A stretch of DNA of 63,842 bases, filler included, from Bigelowiella natans CCMP2755 (lineage: Eukaryota; Protista; Cercozoa), in the NCBI GenBank assembly GCA_000320545.1. It is 3 parts of 3 records of this genome, joined end to end, with 100 filler letters (N's around TTAATTAATTAA, not from the genome) between each part and the next. Parts side by side here need not be neighbours in the genome. Positions count along the whole stretch, not along the records: positions 1 to 22,764 come from ADNK01002903.1; 2 more parts are not named here. One strand, 5' to 3'. Position 1 is the first letter of the stretch, and every line of letters starts with the position of its first letter. The notes under the pieces are model-generated. The model made no database searches and was not told where the DNA came from. It worked only from the letters and a program-made list of their open reading frames with translations. Below, one piece after another: positions 10,564 through 16,356 of this stretch. Both the position numbers and the translations under genes were made by a program.

Positions 10564-13500
10564 ATGGAGGTTCCCAGGGCACGGGGAGAGCTGGGATATA
10601 TATATATATATATATATATATATATATATAGAGAGAGAGAGAGAGAGAGAGAGAGAGAGAGAGAGGAAAAAGAGAGAGAGAGAGAGAGAGAGAGAGAGAG
10701 AGAGAGAGGAAAAGAGAGAGAAAGAGAGCGAAAGAGAGAGAAAGACTAAGGCCTGTAGCCGTTTATTTTAGCCTGAGGCAGAATGTCGAAATCATACAGA
10801 CGGACTGGAATGCACCGACAAGGAAGCAATTCGAAGATTTTTCTAGTGAGGATGTAGTCAAATGGCTCCGTGCGAATGCCAAGCGTCTCAGAACGAGGCC
10901 AAACATCATTCAGGTTTAAACATAGATCCGTATCTCTCCACCCCCGTCCCTCTCCAGTAGAATCCCATGCATATGATCATTAAAAAACATCTCCGTTTGT
11001 TGCAATCGCGCAAGCTTTCAGTGCACATAAATATTCGAATAAGTCATCGGTGACGACACTGGGATTTAACTACTAAACCTGCTGAATTTACAGATAATAG
11101 AGGAGAACGTGCTCGCAGGTGAAGATATCTTGGGAATGACGCAGGACGAAGTAAAGGAGATGGTTCAAGGCAAGATGGGTCCTCGAAGACAATTCAAGGC
11201 CCTCGTCTCAACACTGAAAGAATTGCTCAAAAAAGGAGACACTAAAGAACCTTCATCGCATGTAAGAAAGAAAAGCGCAATCAATTTATCCAAAATCCTT
11301 TCTTCGATAGATCACACGAGCAGGATTTAGATCACACGAGCAGGATTTAAATTTGCAATTGGAATTCTTAGAAATATATACATATATATACTGATACTTA
11401 TAAACCTATTTAAATTATACATATACCTTGCTTAGTACATCAATACAATTCTAACTCTGAATTGAATATGATAATAATTACTATTATTAACAATGTAATT
11501 ATTATTCTCAGTCTGCACCACATTGATCTTCTCTCCGCACTTCTCTTCACCCTTCTCCGTAGTTCTCTCCGTCTCACGCAAAGCCAGCCGTGTCAGCCGA
11601 ATATGCCCCGGCTCACATTGCATTCATAGCCTCTTGTCTGATAAAAGACTCCGACAAGCTTGACCTGGAAACAGAGTATGAGATCATGCAGGACTTGATC
11701 AGTGGGCATTCCGATTTCCAGTTTTCGAGATGGCGTGCAAGCGTGGGGCAGATACAAAACGCTATGGATTCGGGTTGTTTCTGTCTCCACTACGCAGGGC
11801 ATGGGGATAAAAAGAAAGGGCTATGCATCGAAGGCGACCTGGCGGACAGTGATGCCAAAACATACTTGAATGGAGAATCCCTTGGAAACATGCTCCGAAA
11901 CATCACACTTTCAAAAACCAGACCCAAGATCGTGTTTCTAGCTGCGTGTCACAGCGAAATAGTGGGAGAAAAGCTCATCGAAGATGGTTTGGTGAGCCAC
12001 GCGGTTGTTTGTCGGAAAGAGGACGAGCTTAACGATCATGTAGCTCCGATAATTGCCAAAGAATTTTACCGACGTTTGTTACGAGGAGAGACTGTTCTGA
12101 ACGCCTTCAGGCAGGCAAAAGAAAAACTTCGGGAGACCGTTAAATGGCGGGTAGGCCAAGCGCTCTCCAATCTTGAAGATCATCTCTCTTACTTGCAGTG
12201 TCCCAAGCTGGAAGAAATGTCCAAGTTAATACGGGATAAAAAGGCGCCGTTTGGAAAATGGTTGTACGAGCTTTTTGATTTATGTTTGTCAAAGAAGGCG
12301 AGTCTGGAGCAAGAGCAAAAAAATGAGATCAAACGATTAATCGGATGGGCCTACGTAGCTGAGGGCGAAATATGCAAATATAAGCTTTTACCTGATGTCA
12401 GCAACGAGAAAATGCACGACGTCAAGTACGATTTCAAGAAACTAGAGCGCCATGTTCAATCCAAGATGGGATGGATTAGGGCCCCCGTACCTTTCTTTTC
12501 GCAGGACTTGGTCCGGAAGCAGTATAAGATCATCGTTCAAAACTATCGTTCTTCAATTAAGAATGATCATGCTGTCTTAGAAAAGAAATTCGCGACACAG
12601 TGGGTGCAAATAGTTGGTGGGAAAAACACAGGAAAGTCTGCATTGGCGACGGCCGTGGCCTGGAGAATGCGACATGACAATGACGGGCTAGAAGCTATAT
12701 TCTGGGTAAGACTCGTTTTCTGCCCCTGTATTTCTCTCGGTTTTCCCCCTTTTATTCTCTACTTTATTTTTTTCTTTTTCTTTCTCTTGTTCTTTTTCTC
12801 TCTTCACTTCTTCTTTCTCTGTATGGGGTATGCGTGTTTTGATATCTTCTTTCTGGATTATCTTTTCAGATTGATCTTCCTGATTTCGCCAATGAAAGAG
12901 ACATAATGTCAGCCGTGGCTAAAACCACATCTTCCGATAAAAGCCGGCCTCTCCATGAAACTCAAAAAGATAGCAGAATCGAAGCGTGTCTTACTGGTTG
13001 GTACTAGCTCGCGCGATTTGTATATCTTTAAACAATGCCACGCGGGAGGTGTGCGGATTTGGTCATACATATTAATATGTAATACATACATACAAATATA
13101 TAATCTATACATGTACATGTAAAACGACATTCAGTATCATTTATCGGGTCCCTGGCCACTCAGATATGCGACAATGTCCCCATGACCGTCCCCGGGCCTG
13201 CTATTTTTCATGAGATACTCAAGATAAGCAAATCTATATTGCTGCTGAGCACTTCAAGGATGAAAATTGAGGATCCAGATTCGTTGGTATGTGATGATCT
13301 TGCATGATGAGTTTCGATACAACATATACATATACATATATATATATATATATATATATATATTTATAAATATATATATTGAATACATAATACTGTTTTT
13401 GTTATGAGTTAATCGACACAATGTGTTGTTTCAGGTTGTAGAGATGGAATCGGCTATATCCAAAGAAAAGTTCAAGAAGCTATTCTATGCGTATCTGCAA

Positions 13501-16356
13501 TCGGTTTTCATTCAATATGGCCAATGGAAACATTCTCATTTTTCAACGCTTTACAAAGGTATCTTATTTTAGTTATTGTTTACGGTTTGCGTTGACTTAC
13601 CATTGGAAATTTCGCAGACAAAAAGGTTGGCAAGGACATACGTAATCCTGCTCTGTGCATAAAGATGGCAAAGCGAATGTCAAGTAAAGATCTTCTTGCA
13701 GTGTCTGGGAGCCAAAAGATAGTCTTTGGAGATAAACAGCATCTAGTCCGCATTGCCGAGATACTAATCGAAGAAGAGAATAAGAAGGAAAAGGTTCATA
13801 TAGTATTTGTGAAGTGTGAGTATACATTTGCGTAATCATAAGTATGTCATACGTACATCACCAAAACGCACACATTTTTTCCCCTTGATCGATGCAGGGT
13901 TCGTCTTCCCATGTGGAAATGTGCAGCATCTAAAATGCGTTCTTACGGTACAATCCTTTTCTCAGACGAGACTTCGTGCATCAATGACGCTCATCCCCGG
14001 TCCACAACAAGTGCCTTTCTTCGTTGGGCGGGAGAATGTAGTCACGCAGGTTCTGCATGAGCTCAAAGACACCAACAAACAAGTGCACCTGCTCTGTGGC
14101 CCTGGGGGCATTGGAAAGAGTCAATTGGCCGTTCGATTGTTTGACGCCCTCATTGAAACCGGGCAATACTCTCACGCGTTTTGGCTGAATTGCCAAACAA
14201 CGGAGCAGCTTCAGATCGAGTACATGCGCATTGCTGAGAAAATCCCTTACCTCCACGGTGTTGACAAGAAGGACACCAAATTAGCCATCCAAACCATCAG
14301 GGAACGAATCGAGACTGAATGCTGCCTCCTTGTGTTCGACGATGTTGCACCTGATTGCATAGATGTAGCAGAGTTCTTACCCAGGAACAAAGGACACGTA
14401 ATCCTTACGTCTAGAAACAGCAAGACTACTGATTGGGATTTGGACGTCAAACGCTGGCTAGTTGATGGGCTCGTTGATGAAGACCTCATGCAGCTTGCGA
14501 GTAAATTCGGGCTATTGATGCCGGGCCCAAAAGACGACGATGCGAAGAACTGCATGGAGTATCTGAAAACTGAATTTTCGGGCTACCCCGTGATCCTAGC
14601 GCAATTCTTCAGCTACTGCAAAGAGATGCGCTACTACAAGGTGGCAGATCGCATCGAGAAATTGCGAAGGAAAAAAACTCTCAAAAAAAAGTTTCTAAGC
14701 AAGGACCCCAACAAGAGCATCGCATACAGACAAAGCATCGTCGAAGTAGTCAGCGAAAGCCTGGATGCAATTACCGCTGGAACTTCTTGCGGCCCCGCAT
14801 TGTTGCGTTCGCTCGCGTGCCTTGATCCAACAGATATTCCGTTGGAGTTGGTTCTTCGTCTAAGGCTTGACACATTGCCCAACCAGGTTGAGGATTGTCA
14901 GGAAAGAGAAGCGAAAGATGAGGAGCAGTTTCTCTCTGGTAGCGAGAGTGAAGAGGATGAAGAGGTGCGCGGTGCATTAGCGCTTCTAGAGCGTTATTCT
15001 TTCATACAATGGAACGATGAAACCAAACAAATAAACATGCACGCTGTCACGCAACAGATAGTTAGATACCTGCAGCCTCAGACCAACATCAAAAGACTAG
15101 TTGAAGACCTGATTGCCTATGGAGGAGACGTTGATAAAGCTCACGACCACCAGGAAGAATGGGCTGCAGTACTCCAGCATGGAACCCGGCTCACGACGCA
15201 CAGCTCCGAAGCAAAACACAATTGGCAACTAGCCAAGACTTTAGGACACGCTTGTGGTGTTGCATGCCTTCATGACAAAGCTTTGAGATGGTTCAAAAAA
15301 AGTGCCAAACTAGCTGGAGCTGAAGCAGTACCCGCTAGGTCAAGAAAAGAAAAAGGTTTACAACTGGCTGACGTGTACAACAACATCGGCAATGAACATT
15401 GTAGCATGGGGAAGTACCCGGAGGCGCTCGTGGAATACAAAAGGAGTCTCAACATGCAGCTGGCGGTGTACGGCACGGAGAAACCCCATCCATTAGTGGC
15501 TACTACCTACAACCTAATCGGCTCAGTGCACAATAGCATGGGAAAGTACCAGGAGGCGCTCGCGGAATTCAAAAGGAGTCTCAACATGCAGTTGGCGATA
15601 TACGGCACGGAGAAAAACCATCCTTCTGTGGCTAGTACCTACAACATTATCGGCTCAGTGTACAATAGTATGGGGAAGTACCTGGAGGCGCTCGCGGAAT
15701 ACAAAAGGTGTCTCAACATGCGTTTGGCGGTGTACGGCACGGAGAAACCCCATCCTTCTGTGGCTACTACCTACAGCCTAATTGGCTCAGTGTACGATCG
15801 CATTGGGAAATACCCGGAGGCGCTCGTGGAATACAAAAGGAGTCTCAACATGCAGTTGGCGATATACGGCACGAAGAAATCCCATCCTTCTCTGGCTAAT
15901 ACCTACAGCCTAATTGGCTCAGTGTACAATAGTATGGGGAAGTACCTGGAGGCGCTCGCGGAATACAAAAGAAGTCTCAACATGATATTGGCGGTGTACG
16001 GCACGGACAAACCCCATCCATTTGTGGCTACTACCTACAGCAACATCGGCTCAGTGTACGATCGCATTGGGAAGTACCCGGAGGCGCTCGTGGAATACAA
16101 AAAGAGTCTCAATGTGCGTTTGGCGATATACGGCACGGAGAAACCCCATCCTCATGTGGCTACTAGCTACGACAAAATCGGCTCAGTATACGATAGCATG
16201 GGGAAATACTCGGAGGCGCTCGCGGAATACAAAAAGTGTCTCAATATGCGTTTGGCGGTGTACGGCACAGCCCATCCTTCTGTGGCTGATACTTACGACA
16301 ACATCAACTCAGTGTACAAAAGCATGGGAAAGGACCCGGAGGCGCTCGCGGAATAG
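10564..16356 (+). CDS. NLR-like protein: SAM - CHAT (caspase-like peptidase) - STAND NTPase 1 (degenerate) - NB-ARC NTPase 2 - TPR array
   Basis: SAM exons 10782-10913 and 11094-11261 (FEDFSSEDVVKWL...IIEENVLAGEDILGMTQDEVKEM...GPRRQF). Exon ~11563-12705 carries the CHAT dyad HYAGHG / VFLAACHS and Walker A GGKNTGKS. Exon 13164-13286 has ICDNV...LLLSTSR. Exons 13435-13558, 13618-13815 and 13898-16356 are in compatible phases, the last encoding FVGRE, GPGGIGKS, LLVFDDV, ILTSR, GYPVIL, MHAVTQ and then TPRs. The start codon and the exon at ~12870-12996 are uncertain. Confidence 0.8.

Follow-up and report, generated by a model that had tools for sequence, protein, structure and literature searches.

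The locus at positions 10564-16356 on the plus strand of the analysed window, a stretch of 63,842 nucleotides (nt) joined from three parts of the Bigelowiella natans CCMP2755 genome assembly GCA_000320545.1, is a transcribed gene of nine exons from an expanded B. natans family. Its reading frame is broken by one additional base in exon 5, and the gene is likely a young pseudogene. We assign a probability of roughly 0.7 to this reading. Intact members of the family are predicted to encode, in this order, a SAM-like domain, a CHAT protease, a short P-loop NTPase, an NB-ARC module with an MHD-like motif, and an array of tetratricopeptide repeats (TPRs). The initial annotation of the locus had proposed the same succession of modules as a receptor encoded by one gene. 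The order is indeed present on one spliced transcript, but the modules do not share one reading frame. The fitting annotation of the locus is one spliced gene with a frameshift, and neither three open reading frames (ORFs) nor an intact receptor.

Three long ORFs are present on the plus strand of the locus, at 11109-11330 (73 amino acids, aa), 11590-12906 (438 aa), and 13816-16356 (846 aa), as had been noted initially. We aligned contigs from the sequencing runs X1, X2, and X3, which belong to three independent studies, to positions 10401-16400. The contigs reveal eight GT..AG introns whose removal links all three ORFs, with joints at 10569/10800, 10913/11094, 11261/11563, 12705/12870, 12996/13164, 13286/13435, 13558/13618, and 13793/13966. 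Every donor and acceptor is canonical. In the resulting gene of nine exons, the coding part begins with the ATG at 10564 and ends with the stop codon TAG at 16354-16356; exons 5-8, including exon 6 (13164-13286), lie outside the three ORFs. The GT-AG splicing between the ORFs, the start ATG at 10564, and the donor at 11261 were thus anticipated correctly. Several of the proposed splice sites were wrong; the acceptor proposed at 13898, for one, is unused, and the RNA contigs use 13966 instead.

The runs were typed as RNA by guess; spliced contigs can come only from RNA. About 70% of the sampled words of positions 10500-16400 are present in the 14 public runs with the highest shares, which come from four studies and each contain at least half of the words. 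This share of about 0.7 is what the exons alone would give, and therefore fits spliced RNA. The raw-read run X22 provided 18 reads, too few to contribute. The composition, microsatellites, and short intervening stretches of the region are eukaryotic in appearance. The locus is one spliced, transcribed unit.

The exons ahead of exon 9 contribute 6+114+168+1143+127+123+124+176 = 1981 coding nt, which equals 1 mod 3, and exon 9 starts at codon position 1 of the NB-ARC frame. The phase-compatible single chain that had been envisaged is therefore not encoded here. The frame set by the ATG halts after 535 codons at the TGA at 13211-13213, in exon 6. The predicted product is 535 aa long and is composed of the SAM-like domain, the CHAT domain, and a Walker A stub, with the NB-ARC/TPR half out of frame. 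Within exon 5, frame 0 reads IDLPDFANERDIMSAVAKTTSSDKSRPL..., and frame 1 then carries ...KLKKIAESKRVLL and continues into exon 6 as ICDNVPMT...LLLSTSR, a run that forms a typical Walker B and sensor stretch.

The DNA alignment with the three closest paralogues, C1678, C967, and C2161, shows one base fewer at CTCCATGAAACTC in each of them. Exon 5 measures 127 nt in the window; its length is 126 nt in the paralogues C1678 and C967, whereas C1213 has 129 nt. The paralogous exon 5 ends with ...KR(I/V)(L/M)L ahead of a homologous gttggta donor (C1678, C967). P0170, the JGI protein model for paralogue C1678, stays in the ancestral frame from exon 5 into exon 6, where it reads ...SKRILLICDDIP.... 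The paralogue alignments, the exon 5 lengths, and the reading of P0170 together indicate an insertion of 1 nt near 12955-12961 in the window copy.

The RNA gives no sign that the extra base is an assembly error. The contigs of X2 and X3 cross exons 4, 5, and 6 with 0 mismatches and 0 gaps, those of X1 cover the insertion site, and no indel variant is listed at exon 5 among the RNA contigs of the three studies. The assembly contains no second haplotype contig without the extra base, and the next best match is 80% identical. Downstream of the insertion, each of the 950 remaining codons is open in the ancestral frame, which indicates that the lesion is young or that the sequence still has some use. 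The modules of the window copy are not in one uninterrupted frame, as those of an NLR-like receptor would be, and the window copy is probably a young, still-transcribed pseudogene. The initial annotation had held that an untranscribed or pseudogenised locus would speak against a receptor; the contigs contradict the former, whereas the latter probably applies to the window copy, given the 1-nt insertion on which the RNA contigs agree. The insertion site also contains an ATG, at 12955-12957, that would open the 950-codon downstream frame (MKLKKIAESKRVLL...).

Several observations weigh against a pseudogene or against the transcript model on which it is based. Given the open frame of 950 codons, the NB-ARC/TPR part may still be produced somehow; the contig depth is approximately twofold higher in exon 9, and the ATG at 12955-12957 is in frame. 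The transcript is not covered from end to end by any one contig. The shorter sides of the joints 11261/11563 and 13793/13966 are 21-28 letters long, under the guideline of 31 letters. The joint 13793/13966 is found in three runs, and its short side has 28 letters. The assembly and the runs probably derive from one and the same cultured strain. Contigs drop minor variants, and an intact allele may exist in a polymorphic or heterozygous state, but such an allele in the population is less likely than a young transcribed pseudogene.

It is also conceivable, although unlikely, that the 535-aa SAM-like/CHAT protein is itself functional as a sensor-less protease, an adaptor, or a decoy, while the 3' part is untranslated or internally started. 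The gene is transcribed, the SAM-like exons are intact, as is the CHAT domain with its His and Cys motifs, and both the ATG opening the downstream frame and the higher depth over exon 9 agree with this possibility. However, mRNAs with a premature stop five exons ahead of the 3' end are normally targeted for decay, and scanning ribosomes would not get as far as an AUG located about 1.9 kb from the mRNA start. The contig analysis detected no transcript start within the gene, and expression is poorly reflected in the depth of Logan contigs.

We consider it very unlikely that a functional chain with all five modules is made from this locus, through absence of the base in the main allele, +1 frameshifting, or skipping of exon 5. 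The skipping of the 127-nt exon would join exon 4, which ends in phase 0, to exon 6 in frame; the downstream exons have kept the ancestral frame open over the 950 codons, and the transcript depth appears normal despite the premature stop. Nevertheless, the 127-nt exon is present without gaps in the contigs of the three studies, which list neither a 12705/13164 joint nor an indel variant. A frameshift signal is neither known nor seen, and the assembly contains no second allele. Two independent adjacent genes, one for CHAT and the P-loop and the other for NB-ARC and TPRs, would explain the differing frames, the lack of a contig spanning the whole unit, and the 28 letters on the short side of the exon 8/9 joint, but they are highly improbable in view of the GT..AG joint 13793/13966 in three runs, the homologous acceptor that is conserved and in frame in C967 and C1213, the CHAT-then-NB-ARC order at approximately ten loci, and the presence of CHAT and NB-ARC in one chain in transcript-derived proteins of Norrisiella and in P0032. 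A young transcribed pseudogene remains our preferred interpretation of the window copy, and the modules that it retains are described below.

Exon 4 is predicted to encode a CHAT/clan CD caspase-like protease with the proposed catalytic dyad H80/C129. The exon product matches Peptidase_C14 (PF00656) with 26.7 bits (cut-off 21.4) and CHAT (PF12770) with a borderline 24.1 bits (cut-off 24). The corresponding values for the ORF 11590-12906 are E 6.5e-6 and 26.4 bits for Peptidase_C14 (cut-off 21.4), and E 4e-5 and 23.6 bits for CHAT (cut-off 24). Proteins derived from paralogues reach 28-31 bits for CHAT. The His motif HYAGHG is located at 11788-11805 and the Cys motif FLAACHS at 11935-11955. The exon 4 products of ten paralogues have a mean column identity of 64%, and all ten share H76, G79, H80, and G81 of HYAGHG and L126, A127, A128, C129, and S131 of FLAACHS. 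We built an AlphaFold2 (AF2) model of the exon 4 product on the alignment of these ten paralogues. The model has predicted local distance difference test (pLDDT) values of 75-93 in the core and a mean of 67.6 overall, and its tail past residue 299 is disordered. H80 is positioned after the strand 74-79 and C129 after the strand 123-128. The best Foldseek match of the model in the PDB is the SAVED-CHAT filament 8tl0 (E 2.9e-9, with 23-24% identity across about 194 aligned columns), followed by caspases, separase, MALT1, and legumain. The Pfam match above the cut-off, the caspase-like fold, and the invariant motif residues bear out the earlier assignment of a CHAT peptidase domain with both putative catalytic residues.

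A SAM domain at the N-terminus, which had also been part of the initial annotation, is likely at the level of the family profile. The reference was the five-helix domain of about 65 aa described by PF00536 and PF07647. Pfam finds no SAM match in exons 2 and 3 of the window when each is taken singly. A profile of exon 3 from the ten paralogues matches the SAM domain of Sfmbt (E 2.2e-4), as well as those of L3MBTL3, Ph-like 3, and Scm. SAM_1 is weakly matched by seven of the ten paralogous exon 3 peptides, with a best E of 8e-4. The only matches of the spliced homologue P0174 are SAM chains, with a weak E of 0.1, and the single-sequence AF2 model of its N-terminus has a pLDDT of 46, too low for a fold comparison. 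The first codon of exon 2 (10800-10802) is ACG in the window copy and ATG in the paralogues C1213 and C2220 (MDSNALTREQFEDF). The sole start in the window copy is the two-codon ATG GAG that closes exon 1.

The first P-loop module, encoded by exons 4-8, appears from its motifs to be a short, divergent STAND-like NTPase. It is approximately 210 aa long and contains the Walker A motif GGKNTGKS at 12616-12639, in exon 4, and a Walker B-like RVLLICDNV with LLLSTSR across exons 5 and 6. Its profile matches are weak: NB-ARC with E 8e-4 in P0170, and NACHT with E 2-3e-4 in distant paralogues. The module yielded no match to a winged helix. We considered whether the module is a duplicate of the second NB-ARC, and rejected this, as BLASTP finds no significant similarity between the two; the module also has no relative in the PDB.

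The NB-ARC and TPR modules are located in the ORF 13816-16356, which matches NB-ARC (PF00931) with E 4.9e-12 and 46.1 bits (cut-off 23.5), DUF7779, and TPR_12 with E 1.9e-56. The NB-ARC module contains the Walker A motif GPGGIGKS at 14098-14121, the Walker B motif LLVFDD at 14326-14343, and ILTSR at 14401-14415. The MHD-like MHAV at 15037-15048 lies in the winged-helix region. The profile match together with the Walker A, Walker B, sensor, and MHD-like motifs classifies the module as a STAND NTPase. The TPR array has a period of 132 nt and 7.5 copies with 84% nucleotide matches, and extends over 15402-16388. The Walker A P-loop, the NB-ARC with MHAV, and the TPRs named initially are all recovered at the locus.

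Decayed TPR-like sequence continues past the TAG (EALAE*) over 16357-16545, which indicates that the present stop truncates a once-longer array. Contigs of three runs leave the locus at 16236 and resume with letters that match 16544 onward. At such a junction, an 82-aa tail rich in Cys and His, ending at a TGA at 16790-16792, would take the place of the last TPR units. It first looked like an intron, but it has a 7-nt microhomology and no GT..AG in any register, and may reflect a repeat-mediated deletion, template switching, or a paralogue. The joints 15202>16159, 10910>11135, and 10900>10508 are likewise non-canonical and were treated as repeat or paralogue artefacts rather than introns.

The initial annotation had suggested a census of paralogues. 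We searched the genome (91.4 Mb, 3736 contigs) with the CHAT/P-loop exon and obtained 45 exon-level matches, corresponding to at least 38 candidate CHAT-like loci. About a dozen loci are 43-70% identical, nine of them over the full length, and a second subfamily is 27-37% identical. The boundaries of exons 2-9 are kept in C1213, C967, C1678, and C590. Where both are present on one contig, the CHAT match lies approximately 1-1.5 kb upstream of the NB-ARC of the subfamily, on the same strand; the distance is larger on C1678. In paralogue C967, homologous GT/AG sites give an open frame of 1609 aa that begins with CHAT and includes all of the TPRs, with its splicing inferred by homology and not by RNA. 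Read in this way, C967 has all modules in one frame. A single chain of the kind proposed initially can be read in at least one paralogue, C967; in the window copy it is broken by the exon 5 insertion.

Stops or split frames are present in C180, C771b, C2220, C811, C1678, C1933, and C1627. They point to birth-and-death evolution of the family, and the frameshift in the window fits this pattern. C1213 is open for 1058 aa, after which the NB-ARC exon occurs a second time, preceded by an identical acceptor. The NB-ARC exon of C1213 (L017 6111-9145) is duplicated in tandem with identical acceptor contexts (ttcatttttcag/AAGAGA); the first copy stops at 7590 without TPRs and the second copy has TPRs. 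The pair could represent alternative 3' exons or a recent duplication. On the minus strand of C590:19000-34000 (L013), a frame of 2253 aa is open without a stop through NB-ARC, TPR, a CHAT of the second subfamily, and a P-loop. The next CHAT fragment and NB-ARC-TPR unit come after it, and the modules of this cluster apparently form a tandem chain or fusion.

A profile search of 1.84 billion representative sequences returned 2818 proteins at E<=1e-3. The top matches are B. natans JGI models, including P0170 (Bigna1 89576) and P0025 (89319). P0170 matches contig C1678 with 100% identity in one exon segment and 91-96% in intron-spanning segments, which identifies the genome as that of B. natans, a unicellular chlorarachniophyte alga.

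The features of the locus are listed below. The microsatellites of intron 1, at 10586-10752, give rise to a spurious 110-aa ORF at 10417-10749, and comparable microsatellite ORFs are present at 7047-7589 and 21483-21971. No neighbouring ORF of the window contains a Pfam family. One of them, at 2306-3013 on the minus strand, is an ATG-initiated ORF of 235 aa with a hydrophobic N-terminus and a cysteine-rich sequence.

Features of the nine-exon locus and their positions in the window
Feature	Positions	Strand	Content
Exon 1, coding part	10564..10569	+	ATG GAG, 6 nt; 5' untranslated region upstream; joint 10569/10800 in X1, X2, X3
Intron 1	10570..10799	+	Contains (TA)n and (GA)n microsatellites
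Exon 2	10800..10913	+	114 nt, 38 codons; N-terminal half of SAM-like domain
Exon 3	11094..11261	+	168 nt, 56 codons; C-terminal half of SAM-like domain
Exon 4	11563..12705	+	1143 nt, 381 codons; predicted CHAT/caspase-like domain, helical linker, Walker A of first NTPase
Exon 5	12870..12996	+	127 nt; first NTPase between Walker A and Walker B; additional base near 12955-12961 compared with paralogues, frame shift +1
Exon 6	13164..13286	+	123 nt; Walker B (ICDNV) and sensor (LLLSTSR) in ancestral frame
Exon 7	13435..13558	+	124 nt; helical part of first NTPase; ancestral frame open
Exon 8	13618..13793	+	176 nt; linker from first NTPase to NB-ARC; ancestral frame open
Exon 9, first part	13966..15354	+	NB-ARC, then winged-helix region with MHD-like motif
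Exon 9, second part	15355..16356	+	TPR_12-type array, TAG at 16354-16356
Decayed TPR-like remnant	16357..16545	+	3' of the stop; touches non-canonical joint 16236>16544

We speculate that in intact members of the family the TPR array would sense a ligand and keep the protein autoinhibited. Nucleotide exchange at the NB-ARC module would then lead to oligomerisation, possibly aided by polymerisation of the SAM-like domain, and the induced proximity would make the CHAT protease active on a substrate. In the window copy, the extra base shifts the frame at a point of the first NTPase that follows Walker A and precedes Walker B, so that the mRNA encodes only the 535-aa stub. An immune role of the family is suggested by its resemblance to known systems. 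The 'inflammasome in one chain' with a role in cell death, as put forward initially, goes beyond the results presented here, since it is an analogy with fungal and bacterial CHAT/caspase-STAND proteins only. A tentative extension is that Bigelowiella, and Rhizaria more widely, might possess a hitherto undescribed repertoire of SAM-, PB1-, receiver-, or kinase-CHAT-STAND-TPR proteins that evolves by birth and death, each a self-contained immune or cell-death switch uniting a sensor with a caspase-like executioner, with the window copy recently inactivated or polymorphic. If the family acts in defence or programmed cell death, NLR-type immunity with the effector in cis would extend to Rhizaria, and B. 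natans would be a tractable alga for testing it. The literature library that we searched contains no paper linking Bigelowiella or chlorarachniophytes with NB-ARC, NLR, or CHAT.

Several proteins outside B. natans have the CHAT-then-STAND core in common with the family, but differ in their N-termini. Transcript-derived proteins of Norrisiella sphaerica combine Response_reg, CHAT, and NB-ARC in a single chain, to which one isoform adds SH2, and the transcript protein P0032 (MMETSP/JGI-IMG) contains a kinase, CHAT, and NB-ARC. P0047 (L030 1997-6385, a metagenome contig from ENA) is one uninterrupted gene for PB1, CHAT, AAA_16, NB-ARC, DUF7779, and TPR. It has the B. natans layout of two NTPases followed by TPRs, with a different oligomerisation domain in front. 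The N-terminal modules of Norrisiella, P0032, and P0047 are thus a receiver, a kinase, and PB1, respectively, and not SAM. Identity to these relatives in the CHAT domain is low (profile E of about 1e-18 to 1e-21). Further matches in Mataza, Paulinella, and marine metagenomes are known from the CHAT domain alone.

The best database relatives of the NB-ARC-TPR part are 37-39% identical and come from metagenome bins; P0001-P0005 span 32-39%. P0001-P0005 carry the label 'Bacteroidota MAG', which is a label only, and are on contigs of 1.7-5.8 kb, except for P0004, which is from ENA, 11.7 kb, and unlabelled. P0003 and P0004 have a Lipase_3 N-terminus. The contig contexts of the nearest relative, on a Tara Oceans scaffold, and of P0047 point decisively to neither a bacterial nor a eukaryotic origin, and P0001-P0005 may be mis-binned protist DNA.

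Proteins that combine caspase-like, STAND, and repeat modules have already been described in bacteria and fungi; what is new here is that the host is a rhizarian and that the proteins have tandem NTPases and a SAM-like N-terminus. In fungi, gasdermin-like HET-Q1 homologues are cleaved by HET-Q2-like CHAT proteins, whose architectures are NLR-like or include TPRs (Clave et al. 2022, PMC8851545). The B. natans family shares with them the combination of a caspase-related CHAT domain with repeat and NOD modules in an expanded family of a eukaryotic microbe, and a cell-death role has been proposed for the fungal proteins (PMC8851545). Q2L-6, the fungal protein that was tested, has its TPRs ahead of CHAT, on the N-terminal side, and is encoded next to a gasdermin gene (PMC8851545). 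Unlike in Q2L-6, CHAT of the B. natans family is N-terminal, preceded by the SAM-like domain and followed by two NTPase modules. No candidate substrate emerged for the B. natans family. The Pfam family Gasdermin has no match in the B. natans genome, which is uninformative, as control genomes are also blank.

Bacterial CHAT proteases, such as SAVED-CHAT 8tl0, the closest solved fold, and TPR-CHAT/Craspase, have His/Cys dyad motifs in common with the B. natans family. They are, however, activated by SAVED filaments bound to cyclic oligonucleotides or by a CRISPR effector, and not by a STAND NTPase in cis. The PADLOC defence models gave no specific match; they returned only a generic TPR match and a weak Old P-loop match. 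The NB-ARC-TPR STAND proteins of fungi, bacteria, and metagenomes share with the family the Walker A and B, TSR, and MHD-like motifs, the DUF7779 winged helix, and highly similar tandem TPR_12 units. Beyond this common architecture, the B. natans family has the SAM-like N-terminus, the predicted CHAT effector, and the additional short NTPase.

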